Origin: Epithemia pelagica
Taxonomy: Eukaryota; Protista; Bacillariophyta
DNA length: 64,000 bases
Assembly (NCBI GenBank): GCA_946965045.2
Contig: OX337240.1
Span: 248,001 to 312,000, forward strand
Reading direction: 5' to 3'
A program made the position numbers and the translations under genes. Below are positions 1-19,458 of this stretch, piece after piece. The first letter of the stretch is position 1. Each line of letters opens with the position of its first letter. The notes under the pieces are model-generated. The model worked only from the letters and a program-made list of their open reading frames with translations, was not told the DNA's origin and did not search any database.

Positions 1-3000
1 CGATGGGGCTTCCTTTTCCTCCATTTCCGTCTCTCTGGCCTCGGCCAGTGTCGCCACGGGAACTCCCCCACGCACCACCACCACGACAAGTCCCTCTTCG
101 CCACGCGGCGTGGTTCATCATGCGACGACAGCCTCGACGCGCAGTACCCGCACGACGCATTCGTCCACGACCAAACGACCCGATACTCCCACCCCGAGCG
201 ATGCCCATCCCTTTACCAAGGCGACCCAGGAACTGCCCTCGTTGGAAAAAGCATGGGCCTGTACGTATACCCCTTGTTTTGTTTCATACAATGCAGTTAC
301 AATGCATTGGGATCCTCACAGTTGTGGACTTTTCTTGTCGTGTGTTGTTCTTGTTCTTGTGGTTGTGGTTCTTGTTCTTGTGGTTGTGGTTGTGGTTCTA
401 CGACACCATAGACTTTGAACATGTCGCCTTGGCTCGTTACATTGTGTCACCCTCGTCTTCGACAAGTAAAAATGCCTCGTGTTGCAATAATAAAAGTGCT
501 GGCTTGGATCGGGCCGATGCCAATGAACATTACTTACCGACCAAATTGTATTCGCCCTGGTGGTGTGCCACACCGCATGCCCAATTGGGCGATTGGGGCT
601 TGGGTATGGGCCTGTACTTTTCGGCCGTGCGGGCCATTGGCATTCTCATGTTGTTGGTGGGCCTATTGAATTGGCCCAATTTGCAATACTATGCCAGCAG
701 CGACTATCACAATCCATCCAATACAGCCCAAGCAGAGGATGCCTATGAGTCGTTGCGACCCGTCTTGCAAGGATCGGCCATTTGTACCGATACCACCTGG
801 GTGCCCTGTCCCGATTGTACCTCCACCTACTTTGCCAGTGACCGATTGGTCACCACCGCCACCAAGGTGGGTGGCGCCAATGGATCGATGCAAACCACGA
901 CGTTTGCCTTGCGCAACAATTGTGTGGCCATTGATAGCGTAGGGGAAACGGGAGTGTCCAATTACTTGACCTTGCTGCTCATTGTCGTGGGCCTCTACCT
1001 CGTCAACAAGTACTTGTCTGCCATGGAAATTACCTTTGATGAAGATGAACAAACGGCGCAAGATTATTCCATTGTCGTCAAGAATCCACCCGGCAATGCC
1101 ACGGATCCCAAGGAATGGCAAGACTATTTTGAACAAGAAGCCTTTTTTACGCACGAAAATCATTCATCCTTGGACGACCAAGACGACGACAAGGACGACG
1201 ACGAAGAACAACCGCAGTCGGATGAAGGCGAAACTCGTCCCACTCGTCGTAAACCACGTGGTCACAGTCGTCACCGTCCGCGTCGTCCGCATGTCACGGC
1301 TTGTACCATTGCCGTGGACAATGACTTGTTGGTCCGATGCCTCGTCGAACGCCGGGAAGTGTTGCGTCGTTTGGAATTCTTGGTCGATCCGGGCACAGCC
1401 CTGGATTCCTTGACCTTGGCCCGTGTCGCGGCCAAACTGGAACGCCATCGTACCGTCTTGCAATCCTTGTGGGCCCACGTGATTTGGCCCGGCATTCCCG
1501 AATACTTTGCCCGTCTCGTCGTCTTGACGGCCAAAATTCAAGGTCTGGCCCAACAGGCGTACCCGGCCACCAAAATTTTTGTCACGTTGGAAACCGAGGC
1601 CTCGCAACGCGCCATTTTGTCCGCCTTGACCGTGGGGAAACATCATGTCAAGCGCAACAACTCGGCCGCCTTGCCTTCCAGCAACAGTCCGCAAATGAAC
1701 AATCCCTTCTTGTTTCGGGGCAAACAAGTGTTGCATGTCAAGGAACCGGATGAACCCAATACCATTCGATGGCAAGATTTGAATGAAACCACGTGGAATC
1801 GAATCAAACAACAAGGCATTACCACCTTGGTATCCTTGGGTCTCATTATTCTCAATGCCTTTGTCATTGGTAAGGTCCACGATAGTTCCATTGTCGCCTC
1901 GGCCTTTTTGGTGGCCTTGACCAATGTGCTGTTCCCCACCTTGGCCAAGTTCATGACCTCGTTTGAAAAGCACGCGTCCGAGGGAAGCAAACAACGATCC
2001 CTCTATTTCAAGATTGCCGCCTTTCGCTTTGTCAATACGGCCGTCCATGTCTCCATTATTACACCCTTTACCAAAACCTTGGATGAAGATGGCGGGACCA
2101 TTCCTCATGTGTATGCACTCTTTTTTGCCGATATTGTCACCTCCAATGGGATTCAACTGGCTGGTACGTACCACAGAATGACCTAACATGATGTCATTTG
2201 GTTCTACTCGTTCTCATGATGTATTCTCTTTTGTGTTGCGTTTTTCACGACATTGTGATGCACAGACTTTGGCGGTCATTTCAAGCGTCATTTCCTCGCT
2301 CCTCGGGCCAAGAACCAAGATGCCATGAACACGTGTATGCAGGGAGCGGAATTCGAATTGGCGGAACGATACACCAACATGACCAAACTCTTGCTCTTGG
2401 CCTTGTGGTACTATACCATTTATCCTGCCGCTCTCTTTTTGTGTTCAGTGGCCCTCTTGATTACCTACTTTACCGACAAGTTTAGTTTGATGCGCACCTG
2501 GAAACGCGCCCCTCATTTGGGTACCAAAATGGCCAAGTTTAGTCGCAATTACTTTTTCCCCTTGACTGTCGTGGTCATGGCGGTACTGGCCTCGTATTAT
2601 TGGTCCGGATTCCCCTTTGACAATTTGTGCGCCCAAGATTCGACGGTGGATTCTGAAGTGGTGGGAACCTGGCTCCTGCAACCCACCACCGACAGCAACA
2701 GTGATGCCTCGTCCTCTTCTTCCGATACCATTGTCCGAGTCCAGGAGACGGACCAAGCCTATCGATTTTGTCTCCAAAACTTTTGGGAATACGACCGCGA
2801 CGAGAGCAGGTTCCCCTTTATTGCCGAATTTCAACGGGACGATGGAGAATGGATGACAGACGATCAGGAAACCATGACACGTCTTTGGGGATGGACGTCG
2901 ATTGCCGTCATTGTGTTGGTCTTGCTCAAAATTGGACATGCCCGCATCCGTGCCCTGGTCCATCAGTTTCGCGGACGGTACAAACCCGTGGGGGACAATC

Positions 3001-3353
3001 AAAACATTAACTTCAGTGAAGTTCCCTCCACAACCTTGTACACACCGCAAGTGCAGTCGTCCGTCTTTTCGTACCCCCTGTTGGCGTACAAGGTCAAGGG
3101 CATTGATCCGGAAAAGATTGGTGGTACCGATCCCGATCGGCCATTGGATTACTACGATCTCACCAAAGATGCAGATGTGCTGCTTCATGGAACCGACGTG
3201 TCGTCGAAAACAGTGTTTTCACGAGTGTTTCATTGGCCTCCACCATTGGATGAGGACGACGACGATGATGACGATGACGATGATGATGAATGGGGCAAGG
3301 AGGAGGAGGACGATCGCCATGCGGCTGGTATTGGGGAGACAACCATTCTCTAA
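1..3353 (+). CDS. OSCA/CSC1/TMEM63-like ion channel, 5'-partial; exons <1-260, 412-2163, 2266-3353
   Basis: GTACGT...AG introns at 261-411 and 2164-2265 join the frames as LEKAWA-Y-FEHVALARY and GIQLA-D-FGGHFKRHF. Multi-TM protein with DYSIVVKNPP, IFVTLETE, EPDEPNTIRWQDL and AERYTNMTK..LWY motifs typical of OSCA/TMEM63-related channels. Confidence 0.8.
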
Positions 3354-3779
3354 GAGTATGATTGGTTGCCGCGATCTATCCTGTAGTTGTTCGTGTGTCA
3401 AGCTGTTATTGGTTGCTGATTGTTATTGTCGCGTACACGAATCTAGTTTCAAGAAAAAAGTGTAATGAATACTATACTGCATGTGTTTCTTTCGAAATCT
3501 AGTTTGACCCAAAGATGTTCTCGAGAGACTTCTACCTCTATGCGTATTACTCCTCTAGTTTAGTTCCATCTTCCAACGTCATCCGTAGAAACCTCTAGGT
3601 CGCTTTTGAATCACGCCCTTTGGGCAAGCCCCTGCTGGAAGCCCAATGTTTCGGATACGAACGGAAACGAATGTTATGATAGCAACAGCAGTCGAAGCAG
3701 TCGTACCTCGTTGGATTGGTGGTTGTTTCCCTTGACAAACTTGTCCTCGTCCTCGCACCATTCGACCAACAGTACTACA

Positions 3780-5108
3780 ATGAATGATGAGGAAGGTACT
3801 CCGTCTCTGACATCCCTGCCCAGATCTTCTTTTTCTTCTTATTCATCATCATCATCATCGTCTTCTTCTTCTTCTTCTTTGTTGCGCCGTGAATGTCGCC
3901 GTCGCGTTCGATTCAATGAACGGTACAATCAAGAATACGATCCACCCACACATTGGTTCCAGGACAGTACTGTGCGTGAGGACCGTACCAAGGAGGAGGA
4001 AAAGGAGGAACGCAACGACGACAACAGCCCCTCCTTGGCCTCTGTGCAATGGTACGAACGATCGGATTATCAAGCCTTTCGTCTGGAACGACGACGGGAT
4101 ATTGTGCACGCCCAAAAACAATTTCAATTGGCCTTTTTGCAATTTCAAAAACTCCAACAAGAGCAACGAGAACAACGCAAACAAGAACGACGACAACGGC
4201 GACGTCGTCATCGTGATGAGGATGGTGTGTCCAGAAACAACGATATGACGACAGAGGTGGAGGAGGACCACCACAAGACTGCGAGTAACCTGGATTGGTC
4301 GCAATTGCAATTTCATGCCTGTGCCACACAATTGCAACGCTTGTATCACGAAGCCTCTCGCATTGACTTTGTCTTGGACAGTGCCCAACCCTTGTGGGAA
4401 GAATCGTGCCACGACAATCCCTACACGTCCCCATTATCCTCGCAGCAGCAGCAGCAGCAGCAGCAAGCACGGGTCGCAGAGTCGGAGGCCTCCAACACGG
4501 CAAAACCACAAGAACAAGAAGAAAAACAAGAACAAGAAGAAGCGCCCGTATGGTGGGAACGATTTTTGGGATTGGAAGTCATGGTCTTGGCCAACATTAA
4601 ACAAGACGTGTTGCATCGACGAGAAATGATTGGTCAAGTGGTGGCCGAAATTCAAGAAGAATACAAACAAGGCTTGTGGACCACATCTCCTTCTTCTTCT
4701 TGTGCTACTACTGCTGCGGTTGCAAGTCCATTTGTCATTAAGTCCGTGGAGGACCACACGCAAGACGGACAAGACAAGGAACAGGAAGTCGATGAAGACG
4801 AAGAAGAAGATGCCACATCTGTCTCATCGTCCTCATCCGAGGATGACATGGCTGGACTGGTCCTTGGCAGCAACAACACTTGCAACAGCAGTGGTTGTAC
4901 CATTCCTACAACCAATCTCTCGGGTCATTCGTTGACCAGCTTTTCGTCGTCCACCGTGCTATTGGAGGACGAGGAGGACGACGACGATGACGACAGTCTT
5001 CTTCTCGATGACTATCGTACCGAACTACGAGATTCGTGCTGCAACTATTCTCAAGCCTGCAACTTGTTTGCCCAGCTCGTGGCGACGATGCAGTATCAAA
5101 GCTACTAA
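3780..5108 (+). CDS. Low-complexity hypothetical protein with RRVRF and QWYERSDY motifs
   Basis: Long open frame (ORF 3606-5108; first plausible ATG 3780), S/E/Q/D-rich. The RVRF...WY..DY..F pattern is common in diatom hypothetical proteins. Confidence 0.65.
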   Translation: MNDEEGTPSLTSLPRSSFSSYSSSSSSSSSSSSLLRRECRRRVRFNERYNQEYDPPTHWFQDSTVREDRTKEEEKEERNDDNSPSLASVQWYERSDYQAFRLERRRDIVHAQKQFQLAFLQFQKLQQEQREQRKQERRQRRRRHRDEDGVSRNNDMTTEVEEDHHKTASNLDWSQLQFHACATQLQRLYHEASRIDFVLDSAQPLWEESCHDNPYTSPLSSQQQQQQQQARVAESEASNTAKPQEQEEKQEQEEAPVWWERFLGLEVMVLANIKQDVLHRREMIGQVVAEIQEEYKQGLWTTSPSSSCATTAAVASPFVIKSVEDHTQDGQDKEQEVDEDEEEDATSVSSSSSEDDMAGLVLGSNNTCNSSGCTIPTTNLSGHSLTSFSSSTVLLEDEEDDDDDDSLLLDDYRTELRDSCCNYSQACNLFAQLVATMQYQSY

Positions 5109-5339
5109 ATGCCTGCTCCAGGAGCTGGCAAGAGAAAAATGCTCTGTCTAAAGTCATGACCATGCTGGGTTGTGAAGTTAAATAGAAATGATTAATATGC
5201 TATTATCAGACGCCTATAAATGCAACGAAACGAATATCACAGAGTGGAGGCCAATCAATGCTGGTCACCAAAGAAAGGTATTCAGATAAACTGTGTTGGG
5301 TTCTTGTCCTTGTTCTCTTGCATTTGGATAATTGCTCAG

Positions 5340-6386
5340 CTAATTTTGGTACTCATCGCAAACCTTGGATTTCTTTTTCTTGGATTTCTTGCTCTTTTTT
5401 TCCTTTCCGGCAATTTGAATGTTGCGAAAAGCCACTGCCGACTCTCCATCCATTGCACCAGACAAGGTGAGGGTCAACGTATATCCATGAACACCAGCCA
5501 ATGGAGCCTGCAAGGTTCGAAAGTTGTCATCCAAGACAACTCCATTAAAAGCCATGGGGTCGATAAGAACGACAATATCATCATCATCCATTTGGTAAGT
5601 GTTAGTTGGGCGAGCGCCGGCACTTGTGCTCTCAACGACTGAGCTCTGAAATACAGCCTCATTTGCCCCACCGTCCACACTATAGCTCCAAGTCCACTGG
5701 TCATCATCCTCATTAAAATTTCCCATGGCGGCCATGTCAATGGCTAATACCAAATCGGAGTAGCCGTAAATGTCAAATTCCCAAGTGGCCATGCACGTTC
5801 CATCCGGTAGAGGATCCATAGCACCAATGGGGGCTTCATTCCGATCATTCACAGTATCGACAATGCCAAAGAATCGATCCGTCCCCAAGGTATTGGTGGA
5901 ATCAATAATGCCTTGATTGTCCCCTTCAAACGGATCTTCTTGTCCGTTACGGGAAACGTCCACAACAGAATCATCGGCCAATGCAAAGGGAACTCCAACA
6001 GTTTGTGGCCATTTACCAACAGAACCAATTCCACACCAATCGCCAGGTCGCCAATTGGCGGCCACCTGCTCTTGATCGTCACCAGCAGCAGTCAAGAGCG
6101 TGTATCTGTCCAAATTCAAATATTCAGCACCAACAAGATCAAATGCGATCACATAGCTTCCATGAGGAGGAAATGGGAGGGAGGCCATGGTAACTGTTGA
6201 TAGGACAGTTGTAGTGATTATGTTTGGATGCGGTAACAAGGCTCGTTTCCGCCAGTGGGTTCTTGCGCTGTGTTGAATTTTCCAAAAAGTGAGCAAGGGT
6301 GTGCATGCCGAAAGCAGTCGCGCAACGATGGTGCGGTGAGCGTGACTCGGGATTGGCGAGAGATACATAGAGCTTCCAGCGCACAC
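5340..6386 (-). CDS. Stand-alone copy of the ExeM N-terminal accessory domain with Lys-rich tail
   Basis: Clear paralogy to the protein encoded at 13300-14015 (FPPxGS..xDLVGA..LNL, WxPGDWCG, ALADDS, QGIIDSTNT..DRFF..VDT.N, LAxDxAAMGxF). Ends GKEKKSKKSKKKKSK. True start uncertain (internal ATG at 6188). Confidence 0.75.
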   Translation of the reverse strand: MCAGSSMYLSPIPSHAHRTIVARLLSACTPLLTFWKIQHSARTHWRKRALLPHPNIITTTVLSTVTMASLPFPPHGSYVIAFDLVGAEYLNLDRYTLLTAAGDDQEQVAANWRPGDWCGIGSVGKWPQTVGVPFALADDSVVDVSRNGQEDPFEGDNQGIIDSTNTLGTDRFFGIVDTVNDRNEAPIGAMDPLPDGTCMATWEFDIYGYSDLVLAIDMAAMGNFNEDDDQWTWSYSVDGGANEAVFQSSVVESTSAGARPTNTYQMDDDDIVVLIDPMAFNGVVLDDNFRTLQAPLAGVHGYTLTLTLSGAMDGESAVAFRNIQIAGKEKKSKKSKKKKSKVCDEYQN

Positions 6387-7853
6387 GTCGTGATAGCGAT
6401 CGCTATTGGACCTCGCTATTGGACCTAGCTAGAGGATGGTACCACGAAAGGCCTCCTAAGAAAATAATGATTAAATAGGTGTCCGATACAGATGTCTTCT
6501 CGCTGTTGCACTGTTTGTTACAACAACAACGACTAAGGAACTGGATTCTATAACGTCTGGGGGTTGCAAGTATTTTTCCTGTGACTTCTCATAATTCCTC
6601 TCGAGTGGTTCTTTGCTCATGCGTATGTGGTGTCATGCCTCGTATTCCCCCACTTCTATGACAGAAAAGGGTGAGTCAATCCTTGAGGGACAACTATGCT
6701 CGAGAGCAATATACCGGTGACAGCCAAAGGGCTTGCTAACGACATGGTCATTATGACACACAAACGAGGTTCCAACAGAAAAAGCAATGCATCAATCGAT
6801 GGCGAATGACGCAGCTGAACATCAAATTTCATGGAGTATTGGACACGGAAACTGGTTCGGCGTCATTCTTGAAAGGCTCTTCCCCCATCAACATGTGGTT
6901 CTCTTTGTTTTCCTTGGAATTGTCTCTACCGCTCACATTATCTTATCCTTTCCATCACCTTTATTTGTCCCTCCTGCGTCGTTGGTGGCATCGGAATGGG
7001 ATACCAAAATCTCATGTTCAAAAGATGCATCCCGTATTGTACCAGTTGCCGTAATACAACGTTTTCAAAGCAATACTAAGAGTTTCACGAAGATTTCGGT
7101 AGGAGGGGCCCCTCTGTGGTTCTGCACACGATCTTTTGCGGCGGTAGCAGCAGTAGCCGAGAACTGAACAGCCATTCACGGATTCTGTGTGTGGATTCCG
7201 TGTTATGATCGATTAGCGATTATTGCATCCCGAACTGGCATTGGTGCCAGATGAGACCGCTCCTCGTACTTGAAAGTGTTTCAGTGTTTAAGTGTGTACT
7301 TGCATCAAGATGGAGCACCATAGCAGGGAGGGAGCCATTTTTCTTTTGTGGCGATCGAATTCGGGAAAAGTGCGGTTTGTAGTGGTACCCTCGTCCGGCT
7401 CGTTCTTCCGAAAGGAATGGGCATGCGTGCTCCGCCTAATGTACTTGTAGGTGACGGACAGACACACGGAACCACAGACACGGCGACCATGATGCCATTG
7501 ACTTGTCATATACTCTTTCGAAAGAGGGGACCTACAATGACATGACGGCACACCAACAAGGAATCGAGCTTTGACCCATCTACAACTGAATGGATTGTTC
7601 CCCAAAAGAACTCCCATCCGAAGAAACACACAGAGATTCCAGAAAAGCCATTCATGTCCCTCTTGTCTTTTCGCCAGCAGCAACATGTACTAGACCTGAC
7701 TGGTTTGCAGATTTCAAAATAACTACCTATTACATTCAAACCGATCGAGCACCTTTCCTTTCACTCGTTGGAGATACATAAAGGCCCTGGATGCTTTTTC
7801 CAGTTAAGTGTTTGCCGTTTTTCTTCGCCGTCCTTATCTCTTCTGTAGTAGTC

Positions 7854-8252
7854 TTAGTGGTACCATGATCCATACTTATTTTTTCCGTAAGAACTGTCAT
7901 CCTTCTTTCCCTCCTTCTTACCAGAGTCATCATCCTTCTTTCCCTCCTTCTTGCCAGAGTCATCATCCTTCTTTCCTTGCTTCTTTTCCTTCTTGCCCGA
8001 AGAATCACGTGGTTTCAAGACTGGAGCGGGTGTGGGCTTTACCACTGGAGCTCGTGTGGGTGGGACCACCGTTCGGGTGGGTGACATGGTCGGCGCGACG
8101 GGCGCGGGTGTCACAACCTCTGGCACAAAGGAGACAATGGCAATAATGGGACTGTGATCCGAATGACGGGCCGGAGACGATCCATCGAAAATAGTCTTGT
8201 CGCGACCAAAGTCAAAATTGTAGTCGAGCGCACTCGCCTCGTCTTCGTTAAT
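7854..8252 (-). pseudogene. 3' part of ExeM/NucH nuclease gene, cut off by the Harbinger insertion
   Basis: Reads INEDEASALDYNFDFGRDKTIFDGSSPARHSDHSPII (EEP/ExeM C-terminal SDH motif), then a P/T-rich linker and (DDDSGKKEGKK)n, ending GSWYH*. In frame with GTWH on the far side of the element once one TSD is removed. Confidence 0.85.
7896..7996. repeat. 33-bp coding tandem repeat (~3 copies) encoding DDDSGKKEGKK
   Basis: Unit ccagagtcatcatccttctttccctccttctt(a/g) read directly from the sequence. Confidence 0.85.
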
Positions 8253-8305
8253 GGGTCCTTACTGAAATGTTTTTATCATAAACATAACATAAAACATAAA
8301 CACAA
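8253..8305 (+). repeat. Harbinger left TIR
   Basis: gggtccttactgaaatgtttttatcataaacataacataaaacataaacacaa is the exact reverse complement of 11435-11487. Confidence 0.95.
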
Positions 8306-8465
8306 AGTTTTTGCCTCTTTATGTTATGTTTATGTTTATGACTGCTCATACCACTGAAACTCTTTGAAACATAAAACATAATAGCAAAACATAAAACATA
8401 ACAGCGGGAACACAAAAGGTCTGTCTTATATAATCTTCATTGCCGTATATAATCTTTGCTGAATT

Positions 8466-8482
8466 CCCCCCCCCCCCCCCCC
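8466..8482 (+). repeat. C17 homopolymer just upstream of the transposase ATG
   Basis: Direct reading. Confidence 0.85.
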
Positions 8483-8488
8483 ACCTCC

Positions 8489-9742
8489 ATGGTTTCGCCT
8501 TTGTTGGCATCAAATTGGCACTTGGCATCAAATATCGTGACCATGGACTACGACGACCTCATCCTCCTTCTCATCCTCCTAGAACTCGATGAGGACGAAG
8601 AAGCAGAACAGGAAGCTGCCCGAGAACGTGACGCCCTAATGAGAAACATCATTCCTAGGGCTGCGCTAATGGATCCCGATCGATCTCCATTTCGCTACTT
8701 GTACCGGAGTGGGAGGAACGACGCCCTCATTTGTCTGTGTGGCTTCGATTTTCCATCGTATCATAGGTTGTTGGCTATGTTCGCCCCGGTCTACAACGCA
8801 TGGACCCCATATCCACAATCTGCGTCCAATAGGGGCAATATGCGTAGGCTTCGACGTCGTCCTGGTAAACGTCGTGGTCGTCGTCGATTGTTGGATGCAA
8901 CAGCTTGTCTTGCTCTTGTCCTAGCATGGTCTAGGACGAGTGGAAGCATGAAAGCACTACAACTTATTTTCGGCATTACGGCAAATCCTTTGTCTGTGTG
9001 GTTGCGGTTTGGCCGTAGGATCGTAGTTGCCATGCTTCGGGATCATCCGGATGCGGCCGTACGAGAACCTACAAGTGAACAAATCACGGCCTACAAAATG
9101 GCGATTAGCGCCTTGTATCCGGATCTAGTCGATGTATGGGCTATGATGGACGGTCTCAAGCTACGCATTGAGATGACTGCGGTACGCCGTGAGATTCAAA
9201 ACATGTTCTATAATGGCTGGCATCACGACCATTTCGTCTCTAACCTTTTTCTCTTTACTCCGGACGGACTAATCCGGATGTGCTATCTAAACGCCCCTGG
9301 CACCTGGCACGATTCGTCGCTCGCAAATCGGTCAGGCATCTATGCCAGGGCGCAAACAATTCACGAACGAGAGCTAGAGAATGGTAATGGGGGTGCCAAG
9401 ATTGTGGCGGACTCAGCGTTTGGTGCGTGCACGTATCCGTGCCTAATCAAGTCTCATCAGTACAACATTGATCGGAACGGAAACGAGCGACTGCCACACG
9501 ACGTCTGGCGAGCCGCTGTTTCCGTTCGACAAGCATCGGAATGGGGAATGCGGGCTCTACAAGGATCCTTCCCTCGGTTGAAGGATCGCATTCACTATGA
9601 AGAAGTTGGTGAGAGAAAGATTATTCTATCGATGATAGTGCTACTGTGCAACTATCGTACGAGAACGGTCGGATTTAACCAAATCCGTACCACCTACATG
9701 CCTCATCTTGAAGAGAACGCAGCTAGATTTGCAAACATGTAA
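8489..9742 (+). CDS. Harbinger DDE (DDE_Tnp_4/HARBI1-like) transposase
   Basis: MMDGLKL, FYNGWHHDHFVSNLFLFTPDG, NAPGTWHDS, IVADSAF and RQASEWGMRALQGSFPRL motifs; uninterrupted ORF. Confidence 0.92.
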   Translation: MVSPLLASNWHLASNIVTMDYDDLILLLILLELDEDEEAEQEAARERDALMRNIIPRAALMDPDRSPFRYLYRSGRNDALICLCGFDFPSYHRLLAMFAPVYNAWTPYPQSASNRGNMRRLRRRPGKRRGRRRLLDATACLALVLAWSRTSGSMKALQLIFGITANPLSVWLRFGRRIVVAMLRDHPDAAVREPTSEQITAYKMAISALYPDLVDVWAMMDGLKLRIEMTAVRREIQNMFYNGWHHDHFVSNLFLFTPDGLIRMCYLNAPGTWHDSSLANRSGIYARAQTIHERELENGNGGAKIVADSAFGACTYPCLIKSHQYNIDRNGNERLPHDVWRAAVSVRQASEWGMRALQGSFPRLKDRIHYEEVGERKIILSMIVLLCNYRTRTVGFNQIRTTYMPHLEENAARFANM

Positions 9743-9760
9743 TCCTATAGTTGTCTTATA

Positions 9761-11128
9761 CTAGTTTTCGTTGTCATAGTCGTCGTACTCGTTGTTCGTA
9801 TGGTCATTGTTCATGTGGTCGTTGTTTATGTGGTCGTTGTTGTTGTTGTTGTTGTTCATCATGCTCGCGGCCATCGCTCCCATGTCCCGACGGTTTCTGG
9901 ACATCATCATCATCATCATCATGAATTGTTGATTCGATTGCTGCTGTGCAGCGAGCGATGCTTGTTGCATCTGCTGCATCATTTGCATCTGTAGTTGAGA
10001 GTGTTCGCGTGCTTCTCGACGCTGGAGCTCGAAGCGCTCCTGACGCTCTTCCTCTTCTCGACGACGGTCGTTCTTGTCCGCGTCTTCTTTTGCAGCGCTC
10101 TTCTTCATGAGAGTCGCTAGCATCTCTTTGGTTGTTGATTTGGGCTCTCGTTTCTTACGAGAGTTGGTGACCCCAGGTGTTGTGAGGGGCTTTCCATCCT
10201 TGTCATCAACTTTGGGTGGGGTTTTTGTTGTTGTGATGTTGTGTTCTTCGGCCGTTGTCTCGTCCGCTTCCACTTCCTCTTCCGCTTCCTCTTCTTCTTC
10301 TTCTTCCTCGTCCTCACTGCCTTCAATGCCCAGCTCATCATCACCAGCCACCGTCCCTGACTGGCAGCGACGCTGGAGCCTCTCTTGAAGCTCCAGTGCC
10401 CGTTCAACGTATTTGGGCAAATCCGGATCTCCAGTGGGCGGCTTCATTCCGACGATCCCTCCAAACTTTCGCTTGAGCGACTCTAGATCGCGCTCCCGAC
10501 CATCTTCCACCAGTAAATTGAATCGGCGGGTCAACTCCTTCCATTCGTCCGGAGAAGTAGGCTCCAGGACTTCGTAGACGTCGAGAAGAATCTTGATGTC
10601 TTCTGAATTGTAGGTGGGCCCTTTGCTGCGTCCCAAGCCACCATTACCGCTCTTCTGCTTGTTAGGAGAGGATTGCACCGGGGCGGTCTTTTTCTTCTTC
10701 GTCGTTTTTGTTGTTTTCTTCGCCGTCGTAGGAGCGGCCTTGCGTTTTGCGGGTTGCTTCTTTTTCTTCTTCGACTCTGTTGCCTTCTTGTTCGAAACCG
10801 AAACCCGTTCCTTCTGTGTCGCTTTCGCCGCTTTCGTCGCCGCCGCTGCTGCTGCCGCTTTCGCCGCTTTGTTGGATTGTTGCAGCGCCGCAATCCGCGG
10901 GGACTGTCGTGATGAGGCAGGCGATGAAAGGATCGACGAATCTGAAGAAGCGTCGGATAGAGGGTTCATGTACCCTGGCGGCCTCTCCTTGTCTTTCTTC
11001 ATGATGGCTTGAGAAGGTTGTGGGTCTTGAGGAGGAGGAGGAGGAGGCATGAGGACGGTGGGATCAACATCCCTCGGGCGGAGCTCTGAGGGAGAGTCTT
11101 CGTCCGAGACATCCGAAAGCGTCGTCAT
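9761..11128 (-). CDS. Harbinger ORF2, Myb/SANT-like DNA-binding protein
   Basis: KGPTYNSEDIKILLDVYEVLEPTSPDEWKELTRRFN...RDLESLKRKF..KPPTGDP trihelix-like segment. Lys-rich region, acidic tract and Q/M/N-rich C-terminus. Lies between the TIRs. Confidence 0.85.
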   Translation of the reverse strand: MTTLSDVSDEDSPSELRPRDVDPTVLMPPPPPPQDPQPSQAIMKKDKERPPGYMNPLSDASSDSSILSSPASSRQSPRIAALQQSNKAAKAAAAAAATKAAKATQKERVSVSNKKATESKKKKKQPAKRKAAPTTAKKTTKTTKKKKTAPVQSSPNKQKSGNGGLGRSKGPTYNSEDIKILLDVYEVLEPTSPDEWKELTRRFNLLVEDGRERDLESLKRKFGGIVGMKPPTGDPDLPKYVERALELQERLQRRCQSGTVAGDDELGIEGSEDEEEEEEEEAEEEVEADETTAEEHNITTTKTPPKVDDKDGKPLTTPGVTNSRKKREPKSTTKEMLATLMKKSAAKEDADKNDRRREEEERQERFELQRREAREHSQLQMQMMQQMQQASLAAQQQSNQQFMMMMMMMSRNRRDMGAMAASMMNNNNNNNDHINNDHMNNDHTNNEYDDYDNEN

Positions 11129-11331
11129 CTTTTCGCGTCCAAAAGGGCAAAAGAACGAACAACGATCGATGAAGGGAGGCGGATAGCAAAATTACGATCA
11201 GGAGAAAGGATTCCTGGGGGGCAACCTTTATATAATATATATGTCTGTAGACCTATAAATGGCACGTCCGGCGTTAGGCATGCGTTGAGAATCTTTCGGA
11301 TGTGTTCGGATGTGTTATGTTTGAACACAAC

Positions 11332-11363
11332 GGTTATGAGGCATGAATTCATGCCTCATAACC
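11332..11363. promoter_or_regulatory. Perfect 32-bp palindrome in the Harbinger right subterminal region
   Basis: GGTTATGAGGCATGAATTCATGCCTCATAACC equals its own reverse complement. GGTTATGAG recurs at 11398 and 11409. Function is inferred. Confidence 0.6.
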
Positions 11364-11434
11364 AAGCGACAAATCATAAACTTAAACATAACCAATAGGT
11401 TATGAGCGGGTTATGAGCCCTACAAAAATTTGCG

Positions 11435-11487
11435 TTGTGTTTATGTTTTATGTTATGTTTATGATAAAAACATTTCAGTAAGGACCC
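11435..11487 (-). repeat. Harbinger right TIR
   Basis: Reverse complement of 8253-8305. Confidence 0.95.
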
Positions 11488-14015
11488 AATGTGCCAGGTT
11501 CCCGTCTCGATGCGAACCGGGGAGGATACTTCCAACAAAAAGTACGCCAAGGTTCCTACTTGTCCATCAAAGACATAGGAATAGGAGTCGGCCCCTTCGG
11601 TGTTGATATAGCCACCATTGGCCAGGACCTCCAGTGGCAATTCCGAAGCGTACGAGTTCAAGTCGCCCAAAATGGCCTTGCTTTTACAGGCCGCATTGGT
11701 GGGATCCGAGGCCATCCAATTCACCAAGACCCGTGCCGCATCGGCTCGGACAAAGTTGCAACTGGCGGTCCCATCGTCGGGAATGGGATCGGGATCTCCC
11801 ACGTCCTCACAGTCGGAACCTTTGGACTTGAGATGATTGACAGCCAAGGTAATACAATCACCCTCGCCACGGCCATCCCAATTTCGCAATTGAAAGGATT
11901 GTGCTACGGCCGGTCGGTTCTTGTTGTCCAAAAAGATTGGATCCACACTCGAATCCAATAGGGCCGCGTCATTGACCAATTCGACTCGGCTGGTACGGTA
12001 CACATAGGCATTGGCAATGGCATCGGTTCCCACAAACGGTACACCGGGATCGACAAAGTCGTACACGTCATTGCCGTAGGCCGTGTTGAGGGCTTTGACC
12101 AATTCGTCAATGGCAAAGACACCATCGCCGTTTTGATCTCCACCAAATTCATTTTCAATTTCATTCAAGGCGTAAATGTCCGCATTCATTTCCACCATGG
12201 CCGTGACGAGCTTCTCGAGCTGTCGACTATATTCCTCTTCATTGTCGGCACCACGAGGATTGAGTCCACTGGGCCCGGACGTATTGTCCCCTTGATCCAA
12301 GGTGGTAAAAAAGTTGAGGACATTGAGCGCAACGATCCGCATAAAGACTTGGGCTTGAATGGTCACGGCCAAGGGCGGTTCTTCCGGTCGAGGGTTGGTA
12401 GGAGCAAATTCATTCCAGGGTTCTTGCCCATTGCTGCGGACGCGCCAGGTAGAACTCGAGGCACCATTGCCCGCCCACTGATAGGACAAGACACCGGTAA
12501 GGCTAATGATACTATCGCCCATGCGTGGAGCATTGTCGGTACTGTATACCGGACCAAAGCCTTCGAGGTTTCCAATAAAGGCATTTTGTTGATTCAAACC
12601 AACCGTCGTCGTAGGTGATGCGACGACGGCCCAATGCTTCCAAATGACGATCGTAGGCCGCGGCGTTGGGTTGGTTGAGTTGTGTAAACTGAACCGGACG
12701 ATCGCCAGGCACCAACTTGATCTCGTTGAAGCGAGCGAGTCGGAACATTTCGACAATTTGCAAACGTTCCGGGAAGATCACCAACATGCCCTCGTAGGCT
12801 TCCAAATCAGGTTAGTAATCGTCATTGGCATCGATTGTGGTATTGAGCGGCGGCGAACTCAACAAATGAATCCTTGTTTTCGAGGGCAAGCATCCACAAT
12901 CGTGACCATGGTCACATCCCGAATTTGCGTTTCGCCAAAAAATTCTTGCACCGTTCCCACCACCTCCACAACATTTCCCACACTCACATCGACGGCCGGG
13001 TTGCGACCATCGTACACAAAAATTCCTTCGGATGTCAGGGGATTGTCATCGTAATTCTCTTCGGGTTCTTGCAGAAAAAAGCCATCCAAGTCTCGAGAGT
13101 CATCGGCATCATTGGCTTGAAAGTCACCCGTGACAATGCCACGAATACGGACCAATTTGCCCACCATGGGACTGGTCTCGGTCACGCCCTGAACTTCATG
13201 GATCAAGGCCGGCACGGGTGCCGTAGCAGTGGGAGATGCAGTCGGAGTATTGACCGTGGGAACGGTCGGCGCATCCGTGCCTTGTCGCCGTCCGGCAAGG
13301 CGCAAATTCCGAACGGCGATTGCCTTGGATCCTCCATCCAAACTTCCCGAGACAGTCACGGTCATGGTCGATGCTCGTGTTCCTCGCAGGGACGCTTGCA
13401 AGGTTTGGTAGTCATCCGTCAAGACCACATTACCGGGCGTGACCAACAAGGGTGCGTCCAAGGTCACTTCGGTGCCACTCTCCATGGTATACGTTTGCGT
13501 GGCGGTTTCTTGGACCAAGGTGGTAAAGATGCGACCCATGTCAATACCATCCATCGTATTACTCCACACCCACGCATCCGTGGCCGTGGCAAAGGCCCCC
13601 ATGGCCGCCAGGTCAACGGCCAGGACAAAGTCGGTCGCATCGGGAACCGCCGAAAGATCAAAGTCCTACGTCAAGGAGCACACGGCACCGGGATTGCGCG
13701 GATTGGCCGTATCGACGGCCGCAAAGAATCGATCGGTCGGCCCCGTATTGGTGGAATCGATAATGCCTTGAACATCGGGAGGAAAGGGATTGTCACCGGA
13801 AATCCCCGTGGCGGAATCGTCCGCCAAGGCATACCGGCCTGTTGCGGCCAGGCAGTGACCGTGGCTACACCACACCAATCGCCGGGGGCCCATTCAATGG
13901 GCGACAAGCCATTGGACGTGGTGAGCACGGCACGGGCGAGATTCAAACTCGACGCGCCCACCAAATCGTACGCCAACAAGGTACTGCCGGCGGGAGGAAA
14001 GGACGAATTGGACAT
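11488..14015 (-). pseudogene. 5' and middle part of bacterial-type ExeM/NucH extracellular nuclease (accessory domain, OB-fold, EEP domain), with several lesions
   Basis: GIVTGDFQ..LDGFFLQE..D.NPLTSEGIFVY (OB-fold), DLEAYEGMLV, LNVLNFFTTL..RGAD, ADIYALNEIEN, NRPAVAQSF, VNHLKSKGS and ILGDLNSY motifs. Lesions: frameshift ~13830, TAG at 13666-13668, frameshift(s) ~12830-12880, TAA at 12812-12814, 4-bp duplication at 12597-12604. The 5' end is unresolved (possible signal-peptide exon 14193-14426). Confidence 0.88.
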
Positions 14016-15066
14016 GCTCCTGCGGATGCTGATCGTCCAATATCAATGGCTGGAATGCCTTAGAGGTACTGAAGAAGATGATGATGAAGGAACCGTCGAG
14101 GCTTGTTTGGTTTATCTGTACATGTATATGGATGAGCTGTGATGAGAGAAAGTTTTACCCTCGCCTTGGTAGTGGTTGTATAGGGGTCCTCATTATTGGT
14201 CTTTTTTTTTTCCTCGGCCTCGAAGAACGACAATACTACTCCACACTCCAGGCGGTTCCAGTTTCTCTGGTCGGTATTGCACTGGATTCGTGGTGGTAGC
14301 AAGCAGTCGTTTGAACCAACGGAACGGACCACACAAGAGATTCCAGAATGTATCTTGTGTGTGTGCCCACAAGTAACAAAGAAGGAGAAGAAACAGGAAT
14401 CTCGAGTAGATTCCATTGGTTGGCATCAGAACCGTACTGCTCTGGCTCTGTGCTACTCTTCATTGGGTGGCAGCAAACAAGGAGGAACAATCAGGAAGGA
14501 CGGTGAAGTACCAAACAGAATCTTGTGTAGATTCCATATTACAGCCACTACTCATCCTTTTATTTCGCAATGCTTCTGCATGTGCCGACAGGCAGTGTCG
14601 TCTTGCAGCAGAACCAGGGAGGATTTGGATGGAATTTTCTCCACCGTTCTTCTAGTAGTAGGATGACCCCAACGGATGTGGTTTTTGGTCGAGCAACACA
14701 ACCATAACGGCAACGAATCTGTTGTTATAATACGTCGTGGAACCGCTGCCAAAATTGGGCTCGTTGGTGGGATCCATCGGTTGAAAGAGTCTCTCTCTTT
14801 CAGACTCTCTAACATGTTTCTGCGGAGGTCCATTGTCAACGGAAATTCGCTACTGGCCATTTTTGGTCACACCGAACTCGTGCCTGGATTGTGTGGCAAC
14901 GGAAACCTCGTCCGGCTCGCAAGTACTTCCGAATGAAGATTCACACCTGAGAATCGGCCGACGGGCGGACGGACGGACTGTGACCGACAGACCAATGGAA
15001 CGGGTGATGGACGGACACTCGGAACCACAGGCACCACCCACCTCTACAGAGAAGCACCACAGGACC

Positions 15067-16017
15067 ATGGGAAAACCCAAACGCTCTCCTCCAACGGCAA
15101 CAACAGCTGCCGTGGCAGAATTCAATCCTCAAGGAAGAATGAAAGCGGTTCCTGCCTTTTCGGAAACGAATAATAAAAGCAAACAAGAGTCGCCATGGTC
15201 ATTTCAACCGTCCCAGAACAACAACAAGGCCGACGTGTCGTCGTCGTCGTTCCTGCGACACTTGTCGTCGTCTCGAAGGGGCCTGGGAGCCACTACTACC
15301 ACTCGCAGCAAAGCCTCGACTTCCCAACACAATTTGGAACGCCGTATCTCGACCATTGGTCAGAAACGCAAAAATCGTCGTCACCAAGACCATGACGACG
15401 ACGATGATGATGACAAAGAAGAAGAGAACAGGCACGACGACCCGTTCGAAGATGAGGAAGGTGGTCGAACATCGATTGGGCCACTCGCCAAACCATTCCA
15501 GGCTCCAAACAGTCCAGTTCCAAACGAGTCCAAAATGACAAAGAAGAAAAAGAACAAGAAAAACAAGAAGAATCCACCGGAGGAGGAGCCAGTCTCTCGG
15601 CCACAATCATTGACGGAGGGGTCTACGACCATCGATTCCAACAAGAACAAGAACAACAAAGGCTCGATCGTCCTCAAAGAGGCGGACTCCCCAACGGCGA
15701 AGCAGCCAAACGAGACTCGACGCGTTGCGGCCGACACGACAAATCCTCCTCCTCCTCTTTCCACAGACAACAACGACCAACACAACCAACCGACTGCCAC
15801 CCACAACAACAACAAGAAAAACAAGAGAAAACGTCTCAAGGTTCGCAGTCGTCAAAAGAATATTCGCAAAGATACGCGTCCAGATCATGCCAAACCATTG
15901 CATTTGCAATTGCATGGTCGACCCTCCTTTCAACCCTACCAAGGACGACCCTTGACGGCCGAAACACGGCGATACTGCAGTAGGACTCGTCACGAGAAAC
16001 AACCAGCCGAACCATGA
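15067..16017 (+). CDS. Lys/Asn-rich hypothetical protein with ordered basic C-terminal motif
   Basis: ORF 14833-16017 (likely ATG 15067). Low complexity, then KVRSRQKNIRKDTRPDHAKPLHL..YQGRPLTAETR. Confidence 0.65.
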   Translation: MGKPKRSPPTATTAAVAEFNPQGRMKAVPAFSETNNKSKQESPWSFQPSQNNNKADVSSSSFLRHLSSSRRGLGATTTTRSKASTSQHNLERRISTIGQKRKNRRHQDHDDDDDDDKEEENRHDDPFEDEEGGRTSIGPLAKPFQAPNSPVPNESKMTKKKKNKKNKKNPPEEEPVSRPQSLTEGSTTIDSNKNKNNKGSIVLKEADSPTAKQPNETRRVAADTTNPPPPLSTDNNDQHNQPTATHNNNKKNKRKRLKVRSRQKNIRKDTRPDHAKPLHLQLHGRPSFQPYQGRPLTAETRRYCSRTRHEKQPAEP

Positions 16018-16895
16018 CGATCCAAACGGTGTTTGTGCTTCTTTCTGGACGGCGGGAGCCACAACACGGTTGACACCGAATCTACACGGTTGACACGACC
16101 AAATCAACGATAGACGTTCCACCCCATGCGCGCCTTGACACGAAAGGAGCCAACGCATGGTGGTGGTGGTGAGATTGAGTTCGGCTCGTTGTGGGACGGT
16201 ATGGTCGTCCTCTTGTCATGATTGTCATGGTCGTCAGGATGATGATTATTATTGTTATTATTATTATTATTTGTGGAACCACGCTTCCAAAGCCGCAGCG
16301 CCTGTCGTTCCTGGCAAACAACAAGACATGGATCCATATAAAGGACAACGACAAGAATGACAAGGAGTACTGCAACAAGTCTCCACCATCCACGTATCCT
16401 CCTATTAGGTATTACCATACTATAATAGGACATGGAACTCACACAAGACAATTGTTGGTGATTCTCTCATGTTCCTCTTCTCCTTTTTGATACAAACGTG
16501 TGTTGTTGTCTTTGGATCGCGTGCCACCATGTTTCTCTACGGAGTAGAGAGGAGTCTATACCTATACATAGGAGTGGAGCTGGCAGCTATTACTCCTTAC
16601 TCCTACCGTCTCTGCTCTAAATTGTGCTAGCTCTCCATAAAGGGAACGAGTTGATGGATCCATCAACAATCATTACTATAGAGTGGAATGTAGGACTGTA
16701 CAGCTAAAAGTAGAAGAAGATCCAAAAGATACCTCAAAGATACCCCTTTCAACGTTCCATCCTACGACTGCTGGTTGTTGCCATCTGTTGCCCATCAACG
16801 GTAGATCTCTTGCTCTCTCTCAAAAAGACACGGCATCTCATCATTGACTTGCTCCTTTTTCCTATTGATTGGAGTTTTGGTGCTATTTTGGGACC

Positions 16896-18315
16896 ATGAA
16901 CCGCATTATTTCACGTGCTCTCTTGTTCTTGATGGCGTCGGCGTCGACGCACGCCTTTCAACCATCATTGGTGGTACAAACTCGTCGTCGTAGTGCCACA
17001 ACGACTGCCTTGTCGTCGTCTACCAAACACGACGACAAGGATCGCCGTCACTTTTTGACCGCGTCGGCTGCGGCAGTCTTGTCGTCCCCGTTCTTGTGGG
17101 GCCTGTCCACCAGTCCGGCCCAGGCGGCCGATGCCTTGGATTATAAGGCCGTGTCGGCCGATATTGCCGAATTGATCCAAAAGAATCCGGATTGGGCACC
17201 GGTACGTGTCAATGCGAACACCACCAGAAACAGAGACTTGTGTGTGCACGCGCCCGTACACTATACTATACTCACAGGGTTTTTCTTGGCTGATCCTTTG
17301 GCATGTTCCACCGAATCGCGAATCTGGCATCATGGTTCCAAATTCTACGATACTCCTCCTACTACTTCTACTGCTATTCTACTATTAGACCTTTATTCGC
17401 TTGGCCTGGCACAGTTCGGGCACGTACGATAAGGAAACCAAGACGGGTGGATCCGGTGGGGGTACCATTCGATTCAAGTCGGAATTGGCTCATGGGGGCA
17501 ATGCTGGATTGGCCGATACCGCCGTTCCCTGGCTCGAACCGAGTACGTCTATAATAAAATGTCTCTCTATGTGTTGTTTGGTTGGTTGTGGTTTCTGCTT
17601 GTTGTTATGGGTGTTCTCATGATGCCACGAAACACACCTTTTTGTTTGCGTTCTGCTTGTTGTGGATTCGCCTTCCGGCCCTGCTACTCCATCTCCACAC
17701 TCGACGACAGTTTATACCAAATATTCCGAAGCCGGCTTGTCCTATGCCGATTTGTATACCTTGGCGGGTGTCACGGCCATTCACGAAATGGGCGGTCCGG
17801 TGATTGGCTGGAGTAGTGGCCGCGTCGATGCGCCGGATGAGAGTGCCGTGACACCCGATGGTCGCTTGCCCAATGCCGATGTCGGTCCGCCCTTGTCCGA
17901 TCCCAGCGATGCCGCCCATTTGCGTACGATCTTTAATCGCATGGGCTTTGACGATCGCGAAATTGTGGTCTTGTCCGGCGCCCATGCCGTGGGGCGGTGT
18001 CATACGACCGCCTCGGGCTATGACGGACCGTGGACCTTTACGCCCACGACGTTCAACAATGCCTATTATCAATTGCTGCTGACGCTGCAATGGATTCCCA
18101 AGGATTGGTCGGGACCGCCGCAATACGTCGATGGACGAACGGGAACGCTCATGATGTTGCCCTCCGACTATGTCTTGTTGAGTGACAAGAAATTTTTGAA
18201 ATGGGTCAAGGTCTATGCCAAGGACAATGCGAAATTTGAACAAGATTTTGCCAAGGTCTTTCAAACTCTCGAAGAATTGGGAACCAGTGGACTCACACCC
18301 ACCGAATGGGTCTAA
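16896..18315 (+). CDS. Class I heme peroxidase (cytochrome c peroxidase/APX family) with plastid and lumen-type presequence; exons 16896-17201, 17389-17542, 17711-18315
   Basis: The two GT-AG introns give [21 protein letters not shown] and WLEP-I-YTKY. Distal R-W-H, proximal [16 protein letters not shown] and MLPSD motifs are present. Confidence 0.92.
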
Positions 18316-18867
18316 GAAAACAACCAGAAGAAACCAAGAAACGACACGGACGAACCAAACGTAGTTTGGCAAGTACACTAGGAATACCGGTAAGAGAGGA
18401 GGAGTTTTGGGATCGGAAGAGAGAGAGAGAGAAGAAAGAAAAGGGTAGAGTTGGAGGAACAAAGAATGCTTTGTTGGTGGCTTTCGTAGTCTAGTATACT
18501 AGTAACCTGTGGTGGAAAGTAAACTGAAAAACATATACCTAGATCCTTTCCAGGAATCCAAACGTACCACGAATGCAAAAACCCACCTTTTACCACTAGA
18601 GAGTCCTTTTGCAGTGGCGCCAAAAAGGAGGTATATGATATATGTCACCCGCAAAGGAGCGGAGACACTCTATATACAGTGCAGCGATCAGCGATCTTTT
18701 GTGGAGTGACACTAATAATATATTATAGAGAGTCCTCTTGTGCCCACAACGAACCATGGTCGCCCTATCGCAGTAGTAGAAGTAGTCAAACTATACGGAC
18801 TATACTATAGAGAGTTCTGATGGGTGACCTTATTTTGATTGGGCACTACAATCATTTATTCACTCAC

Positions 18868-19165
18868 TCACTCATGCCGACGACGACAGAACAGTTTGGA
18901 CAAGGTGGGAGCATTGACAATGAAGAGAAATCCCACCAAGGCAAAGGAAACGATCCAAAAGGATGGATAAAACAAGTCTTTACAGTCATCCGGTCGCGAT
19001 GTGCCCACGTTGGGATACACCAAGGCGGCTCCATAACCCAACAAAAAGGTGAGAACCGCCATGCTCAAAAAATGATGTACCCCCCGCAACGAACCGCAAT
19101 ACGACGTGTTGTCGTTGTTGGTGGTGGTGTCGTCTTGCTTGTTGGAATCGTCTTGCTCGTCCTTG
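18868..19165 (-). pseudogene. 3' part of a 4-TM (TMEM272-like) gene split by the Copia element
   Basis: KDEQDDSNK...LTFLLGYGAALVYP..DDCKDLFYPSFWIV; continues in frame from 25365-25680 across the CCTTG TSD. Confidence 0.75.
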
Positions 19166-19458
19166 TGTTGGAAATAATGAGACAAGCGAAAAAATGATTC
19201 ACGAGTGCTCGGCATCGCCCGGAGTAAAAAATCAAACAATGACGGGAAGTACATACAGAAACAGTCACGAACATACACGCGAGCCAGAACGGAAACGCGT
19301 AACGTTCGCTGACGTGGTGAGATTTGGAAAAACAAAGACGAGCAAGGCGAAGAAATCCTGTGCTCATTCTTTGGAGATAATCAAGGCAGTAAAGTAAAAC
19401 GACGTTTGATTTACGACGATAGTGCTTAAGCTGACGGCTCTGCACCCATCGTACAACA
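19166..19458 (+). repeat. 5' LTR (293 bp)
   Basis: No difference from 25072-25364 seen by eye; the internal 67-aa ORF translation is identical in both. Confidence 0.95.

Follow-up and report, generated by a model that had tools for sequence, protein, structure and literature searches.

A probable unitary pseudogene of an ExeM/NucH-type nuclease, broken in both haplotypes of the diatom Epithemia pelagica

Does a diatom keep a bacterial-type DNase on its wall? The question is raised by a locus at positions 7,854 to 14,015 of a 64,000-nucleotide (nt) stretch of the Epithemia pelagica genome (GenBank assembly GCA_946965045.2, contig OX337240.1, positions 248,001 to 312,000 of the forward strand; hereafter, the window). 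An initial annotation had read this locus as a horizontally acquired ExeM/NucH extracellular nuclease with a silaffin/cingulin-like tail, that is, as a working, wall-bound system for scavenging extracellular DNA. We find both haplotypes of the locus to be multiply broken, and the claim of a working system fails on this point. Very probably, the locus is a unitary pseudogene of an ExeM/NucH-type nuclease, recently inactivated and dead in both haplotypes; the call is made because several independent disabling lesions fall at positions that are conserved in relatives.

Coding row and family assignment

The nuclease gene lies on the minus strand of the window, with its ATG at 14015 and its stop codon at 7856–7854. 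Six-frame open reading frames (ORFs) and three-frame translation show 11488–14015 to be several reading frames, not one. Four pieces of the locus match the NCBIfam model NF033681 (ExeM/NucH family extracellular endonuclease, 546 positions, cut-off 300 bits) collinearly, with a summed score of ~410 bits and 277 bits for the best single piece; no single piece reaches the cut-off because the gene lies in pieces:

12859–13602: model positions 1–79, 66 bits
12512–12805: model positions 98–170, 49 bits
11491–12756: model positions 176–493, 277 bits
7857–8249: model positions 507–542, 17.5 bits

This match, and a position inside the bacterial radiation (below), bear out the bacterial-type ExeM/NucH assignment of the initial annotation; its domain order of accessory domain, OB fold, EEP nuclease, linker and tail is likewise real. 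Pfam returned nothing on the nuclease pieces, Exo_endo_phos included, even at E ≤ 1, and only one nuclease copy is present within the 64-kb window. Read from 14015 to 7854, with two proline/threonine (P/T)-rich linkers, the parts are:

13282..14015, minus strand: N-terminal accessory domain, broken by a 7-nt deletion after 13832 and a TAG at 13668–13666
13213..13281, minus strand: first P/T-rich linker, from translation; aligns with the serine/proline (S/P)-rich stretch preceding the OB fold of Amphora P0123
12602..13212, minus strand: OB-fold (YhcR-like) part, by NF033681 positions 1–170 and tblastn against P0038, P0116 and P0123
11491..12600, minus strand: EEP nuclease core, open frame, ending at the transposon after '...GTWH'; NF033681 positions 176–493
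8127..8249, minus strand: end of the EEP domain (NEDEAS...SDHSPIIAIVSF), continuing the frame that the transposon interrupts; NF033681 positions 507–542
8007..8126, minus strand: second P/T-rich linker, from translation
7854..8006, minus strand: Lys/Asp/Gly-rich tail, 50 residues and the stop codon, with 33-nt repeats at 7897–7995

The C-terminal 131 codons (8249–7857) are open through the EEP end, the P/T linker and the tail, and the EEP end (8127..8249) is 54–71% identical to P0001, P0002 and P0038. The ancestral coding row amounts to ~960 codons, 833 of which align to the second haplotype up to its break-off point, with ~130 beyond. The EEP motifs NVLNF, EIENE, NHLKSK, GDLNS and SDHSP are kept in the window copy; the Asp of 'GTLDY', a residue invariant in relatives, is Ala. 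The rebuilt gene of the initial annotation is thus an inferred ancestral state that is absent, as a gene, from this genome.

The initial annotation had recognised no intron in 11488–14015, and none is needed there. We considered introns as the source of the frame changes and rejected them: homology crosses each break with overlapping frames, the stops sit on conserved Trp and Gln codons, and it is precisely at the three breaks that the other haplotype departs from the window, by 7, 13 and 4 nt.

Lesions in the two haplotypes

The window is represented by contig ctg1339l of the ENA assembly ERZ21939226, in which locus L002 equals window 8374–15522 at 100% identity. A second contig of that assembly, ctg1362l (locus L001), is the syntenic second haplotype at 93–96% identity. 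Lesions were placed by aligning relatives, a neighbouring paralog of the accessory domain and the second haplotype. In total, the window copy carries three frameshifts, two in-frame stops and a 3.2-kb Harbinger transposon, the small lesions being:

After 13832, minus strand: 7-nt deletion relative to L001
13668–13666, minus strand: TAG stop; TGG in L001, Trp in the paralog
After 12891, minus strand: 13-nt deletion relative to L001
12814–12812, minus strand: TAA stop; CAA in L001, Gln in P0116 and P0123
~12605–12602, minus strand: 4-nt tandem duplication within 'YDDG/LNQQN'

The second haplotype, L001, is broken at other places, given here in window positions:

13680–13678: TGA in place of the window's TGC
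After 13601: +1 G
After 12313: −1 nt
After 11822: −22 nt
3' of 11533: all sequence replaced by a partial copy of another gene

The two haplotypes have no lesion in common. L001 is also changed at three invariant sites (T to K, R to H, and D to G in 'GDLN', giving GGLN), and the product called on it, P0127, is truncated. In public sequencing runs, a Logan contig of run X1 (2708 nt) matches window 12377–14050 without gaps, while those of X2–X4 show the −4, +1, −1 and −22 forms, with roughly half the depth wherever the contigs recovered the two forms together.

The largest lesion of the window copy is the transposon:

8253..11487, strand not assigned: intact PIF/Harbinger transposon, 3.2 kb, with terminal inverted repeats (TIRs) at 8253–8305 and 11435–11487
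8456–9742, plus strand: open DDE_Tnp_4 transposase ORF inside the element
9761–11128, minus strand: open DUF6818/Myb-like ORF inside the element

Its inverted repeat is 100% complementary and spans 54 nt as reported (8252–8305 and 11435–11488); we assigned the outermost base of each arm to the target duplication, which leaves TIRs of 53 nt. The 3-bp target duplication at 8250–8252 and 11488–11490 reads AAT on the plus and ATT on the minus strand, and the terminal 27-mer of the element occurs within the window only at its two ends. The insertion sits between the His and Asn of 'WHINEDE', and excising 8253–11487 together with one ATT joins '...GTWHI/NEDEAS...SDHSP' gap-free against every relative. 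The DDE_Tnp_4 transposase, second Myb-like ORF, TIRs and 3-bp target duplication are all as in the PIF/Harbinger family; the AAT/ATT duplication differs from the TWA (TAA/TTA) that is usual there. Public-run contigs join the Harbinger ends to several other flanks (loose ends at 8249/8250 and 11490), and the element is therefore multi-copy. An empty-site allele was not found: no read contig skips 8253–11487, and the other haplotype is without the site altogether.

The timing of the decay was approached through a frame-corrected alignment of the haplotypes, from which two haplotype-specific insertions were taken out (2499 columns, 833 codons; NG86). Between haplotypes, the nuclease row has a synonymous divergence (dS) of 0.100 and a nonsynonymous divergence (dN) of 0.0205, giving a dN/dS of 0.205, against 1.1 and 1.7 in the wrong frames of the same alignment. 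The intact neighbouring ORFs have dN/dS values of 0.20–0.38, and their indels are in frame except in one ORF, where an intron is the likely cause. As the ratio of the nuclease row is like that of its intact neighbours, selection held the row under constraint through most of the period after the haplotypes separated, and the decay is recent and independent. Over window 1–19166 the two haplotypes differ by 4–13% at the DNA level, with dS of 0.05–0.11 in ORFs and many indels; such divergence between alleles is unusual and may point to a hybrid or long-asexual genome.

Several points weigh against this reading of recent gene loss on both haplotypes. The four runs were all produced in a single study and may overlap with the assembly's own data, so that they are not fully independent; in contigs, a rare intact allele or one with an empty site could go unseen. 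For the 7-nt and 13-nt differences, which are not listed among the indels of X2–X4, the basis is the assembly and the X1 contig. A dN/dS no higher than in the intact neighbours also fits poorly with nine small lesions; by a rough estimate, which is not a fitted model, a fit needs a ratio of ~0.05–0.1 for the enzyme itself and ~30–40 of the 92 substitutions (about a third) to have arisen after inactivation. No run recorded as RNA contains the stretch, and the 5' exon and signal peptide described below are predicted.

Could the breaks then be errors of assembly or consensus, or could a third, intact allele exist, with the enzyme still being made? Two indels of the other haplotype (+1 G after 13601, −1 after 12313) are single bases, and contigs drop rare variants. 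However, consensus errors do not typically take the form of three nonsense substitutions or of indels as long as 4, 7, 13 and 22 nt, and the Logan contigs both match the window gap-free over 12377–14050 and show the −4, +1, −1 and −22 variants. Moreover, a search of the whole library found no copy closer than the two haplotypes, the next best being 55% identical. We consider error or a third allele very improbable, and return to a gene that is broken in both haplotypes.

Tail, accessory domain and 5' end

The 50 residues of the tail (8006–7857) comprise 16 Lys, 9 Asp, 8 Gly and 7 Ser (32% Lys, 18% Asp, 14% Ser) and end in YGKNKYGSWYH. The initial annotation had written its repeat as (DDDSGKKEGKK)3; the repeat is real but not in three clean copies, as it consists of two 33-nt copies at 97% identity and one degenerate copy at 70%. 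Under the pentalysine-cluster rule of 5 Lys in 12–14 residues (PMC9650480), 29 windows qualify in the tail, but so do 26 in the Myb-like ORF of the Harbinger element, 21 in a neighbouring ORF and 16 in the accessory-domain paralog, and the rule is therefore unspecific here. In the C-terminal piece, no R-x-L occurs (only RTV, RAP and RDS) and there is no Trp- or Tyr-rich domain; its 3 Tyr and 1 Trp all fall in the last 12 residues. The silaffin/cingulin likeness asserted earlier reduces to composition.

The Lys-rich tail is absent from every nuclease relative whose C-terminus could be read: in P0123 a P/T linker leads into a hydrophobic end, P0002 has an acidic tail, and P0001 and P0003 carry nothing further. 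The initial annotation had itself named a lack of the tail in orthologs as refuting its proposal, and Amphora P0123 and P0001–3 are without a Lys-rich tail. The same tail does recur in the second haplotype, where, with two repeats and 4 differences in ~105 nt, it ends a 317-residue ORF (L001:10876–11829, P0270) in which two Cys-rich units come after an initial signal peptide. The body of this chimeric ORF is a recent partial copy (94–99% identity) of a gene on ctg1353l (P0271, L003:7761–8491), which itself ends differently, in a Cys-rich and hydrophobic segment. At L001:10646–11829, a 1.08-kb copy comprising the upstream region, signal peptide and Cys-rich unit of that gene, with an internal tandem duplication, has replaced the nuclease 3' end; the junction is a GGC microhomology inside the K repeat, and the fusion to the tail is in frame. 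The origin of the copy and a junction inside the K repeat indicate that the window-like arrangement, nuclease followed by tail, is ancestral. When the chimeric protein was searched among proteins of 174–555 residues, it retrieved itself and the source gene and no other tail bearer; from these sequences, the Lys-rich tail appears specific to this locus.

The accessory domain has a neighbouring paralog, and upstream of the nuclease there is a small ORF that may belong to it:

5343..6188, minus strand: stand-alone accessory-domain paralog, intact, with a Lys-rich end of its own (KEKKSKKSKKKKSK)
14335..14426, minus strand: upstream mini-ORF with a signal-peptide-like start (MPTNGIYSRFLFLLLLCYLWA...), in both haplotypes; possible exon 1

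The accessory domain of the nuclease is 42–47% identical to the paralog, which is without an evident signal peptide and has a classic basic cluster at its end. The paralog lies in a 2.3-kb segment (window 5278–7561) that is without counterpart in L001, a presence/absence difference between the haplotypes. Other accessory-domain relatives are few and secreted: a signal peptide is present in P0273, and the ends are of PEP-CTERM type in P0274 and of IPT..W type in P0276/7. A domain profile finds the accessory domain N-terminal in bacterial ExeM/NucH enzymes (P0200, P0253, P0164 and P0181), and in P0200 of Parahaliea mediterranea it directly follows the signal peptide; the combination was therefore inherited from bacteria, not assembled in the diatom. 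The domain itself, unnamed, of ~230 residues and without a Pfam hit, occurs in secreted bacterial proteins whose ends are of the PEP-CTERM or the IPT..W (IPTL-like) type and in several ExeM/NucH nucleases; it may represent a new domain family. Its AlphaFold2 model is poor (mean pLDDT 56, usable over residues 130–265 only) and gives a hint of a carbohydrate-binding-module- or lectin-like β-sandwich, at TM values of 0.2–0.5; an ESM Atlas search with the domain returned nothing above 0.87.

The main ORF starts with MSNSSFPPAGST..., which has no hydrophobic core and no signal peptide, and an in-frame stop lies 9 codons upstream of it in both haplotypes. The mini-ORF (14426–14335) lies ~320–410 nt upstream of the main ORF and can be joined to it in frame via GT..AG pairs, for example GT(14334)..AG(14020). 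It differs by 1 mismatch in 92 nt between haplotypes, versus ~5% in the stretch behind it, a difference that is not significant. By likeness to the signal-peptide mini-exon of the related locus L004 (below), the mini-ORF may be exon 1. A comparable short ORF (window 6660–6751, minus strand), with a signal-peptide-like start (MTMSLASPLAVTGILLSS...), lies ~470–560 nt upstream of the paralog ATG, and may be a 5' exon of the paralog, as suspected for the nuclease.

What the tail was for admits several readings. From L001, where it closes the ORF with a signal peptide and two Cys-rich units, one might suppose that the tail terminates a separate gene, was never part of the nuclease and is continuous with it by accident. 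Yet the body of that ORF is the recent 94–99% copy whose source gene has its own, different end, and this copy replaced the nuclease 3' end at the GGC microhomology inside the K repeat; in the window, moreover, the row is open from the EEP end through the P/T linker into the tail. P/T linkers behind the EEP domain are also ancestral, being present in Amphora P0123 and, as a Pro-rich linker, in Shewanella ExeM (PMC6085458), and we hold a separate gene to be quite improbable. The nuclease row and its tail being taken as one gene, the tail, instead of being a wall anchor, may have been rich in Lys, Asp and Glu so as to bind nucleic acids or as nuclear proteins are, or may have been a low-complexity extension that was selectively neutral. 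The main ORF and the paralog both lack an evident signal peptide, the paralog ends in its basic cluster, and a basic tail would raise the affinity of a DNase for DNA. The tail also alternates KK and DD, a composition found in many nuclear proteins. Against this, all readable relatives of the nuclease and of the accessory domain have a secretion signal, and a signal-peptide-like 5' mini-ORF is present here; the reading is tentative and, on balance, unlikely.

The idea of a wall anchor takes two forms. In the first, which we find scarcely credible, a horizontally acquired DNase works on the frustule or in extracellular polymeric substances (EPS), held by a silaffin/cingulin-like tail, and scavenges extracellular DNA. 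It draws on the bacterial-type nuclease, a coding row under purifying selection until recently, a tail kept in frame in both haplotypes, relatives tethered to the surface by other C-terminal signals, and the passing of the pentalysine composition rule (PMC9650480). For this copy it is contradicted by the many breaks in both haplotypes; in addition, orthologs are without the tail, the Lys rule is passed by a transposon protein and a neighbouring ORF, the C-terminal piece has no RXL and few Tyr and Trp, the main ORF is without signal peptide, and nothing ties the tail to silica. In the second form, the diatom ExeM/NucH clade would swap its C-terminal tether by lineage (GPI-like in Amphora, acidic in another relative and Lys/Asp-rich here; GPI, glycosylphosphatidylinositol), the tail here having been a selected wall, silica or EPS anchor until the recent loss of the gene in both haplotypes and since captured, in frame, by the duplicated secreted Cys-rich gene of the second haplotype; we rate this as improbable. 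The silica-anchor idea is one of composition and cannot apply to this copy, and DNA, an acidic polysaccharide and silica are all candidate binding partners of the tail.

Taken together, a history of a gene gained from bacteria and lost in both haplotypes can be proposed. The ancestral protein would have resembled its bacterial and diatom relatives in being a secreted DNase that depends on metal ions, probably using a small 5' signal-peptide exon, and its charged tail would stand in place of the hydrophobic anchor at the C-terminus of Shewanella ExeM and of the Amphora ortholog. After long purifying selection, each haplotype collected its own disabling lesions. The two haplotypes thereby offer a clean case of a long-constrained gene decaying in parallel and independently, in which one copy was hit by a transposon and the other gave rise to a chimeric ORF; annotation or citation of the locus, a dead gene, as a wall-bound DNase is unwarranted.

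Ancestry and comparison with known systems

A word search and a whole-library HMMER search retrieved thousands of bacterial ExeM/NucH proteins at ~40–50% identity. The best single match is P0123 of Amphora coffeaeformis (EukProt EP00977_P022953), with 55% identity over the EEP part and a layout of signal peptide, S/P-rich stretch, OB fold, EEP domain, P/T linker and hydrophobic GPI-like end; P0121 shares with it the signal peptide, P/T linker and hydrophobic end. Two further relatives lie on contigs of eukaryotic type: that of P0001 also holds RCC1, TRM13 and thioredoxin genes, and L004 (the locus of P0268, in the cluster of P0002) has TOP3B- and LRR-type neighbours. At L004:64–3027 (ENA ERZ27264700 k141_306549), an apparently intact gene has a signal-peptide mini-exon, an LTD, an OB fold, an intron, the EEP domain and an acidic Asp/Glu end.

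Trees built on the EEP part place the window sequence, P0123, P0001–3 and P0128 in a small eukaryotic clade among bacterial sequences (SH-aLRT 93–96), for which these trees resolve no bacterial sister group. On these sequences a bacterial ancestry of the nuclease is reasonable, and the transfer is older than this species; the gene family probably entered diatoms or their relatives from bacteria before the divergence of this species and Amphora. Of the horizontal acquisition in the initial annotation, the bacterial type stands; the transfer, however, predates the species, and the accessory domain is part of the bacterial architecture. The literature searched contained nothing that describes ExeM/NucH-type nucleases in diatoms; what emerges is a small eukaryotic ExeM/NucH clade, with at least Amphora among its members, that has eukaryotic secretion and anchoring signals.

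Set beside known wall proteins, the tail resembles the silaffins and cingulins of Thalassiosira pseudonana in Lys clusters that satisfy the 5-in-12–14 rule. Silaffins have an RXL processing site and a Ser-rich, phosphorylatable context, and in cingulins Trp- or Tyr-rich domains alternate with Lys-rich ones. Here, in contrast, the main ORF has no signal peptide and no RXL site and the tail is Asp-rich rather than Ser-rich, while one short Tyr/Trp motif stands against the W- or Y-rich domains of cingulins; the tail has no sequence relatives, and the likeness to either group is by composition alone. All known T. pseudonana wall proteins have an N-terminal signal peptide for the endoplasmic reticulum (PMC9650480).

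The likeness to Shewanella oneidensis ExeM and Vibrio cholerae Xds is one of architecture: an extra N-terminal domain, a YhcR-like OB fold, the EEP domain, a Pro-rich linker and a C-terminal tether. Shewanella ExeM consists of a signal sequence, LTD, OB fold, EEP domain, Pro-rich linker and hydrophobic GlyGly-CTERM anchor, and the DNase activity of ExeM/NucH enzymes is Ca2+/Mg2+-dependent (PMC6085458). The locus described here differs in having, in place of the LTD, the accessory domain found in Parahaliea, Mameliella and Actinomycetota enzymes, in its charged Lys/Asp/Gly tail versus GlyGly-CTERM, in its eukaryotic host and in being broken. Closest are Amphora P0123, P0001–3, P0128 and L004, which belong to the same clade and share the OB fold, EEP domain and P/T linker, although none has the accessory domain or the Lys-rich tail: in P0123 the signal peptide stands directly before the OB fold and the end is hydrophobic and GPI-like, whereas L004 combines its signal-peptide mini-exon with an LTD and an acidic end. 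An intact member of this eukaryotic clade would be the right object with which to ask if extracellular DNA is digested at the surface of diatoms, and L004 would serve well for comparison within the family.

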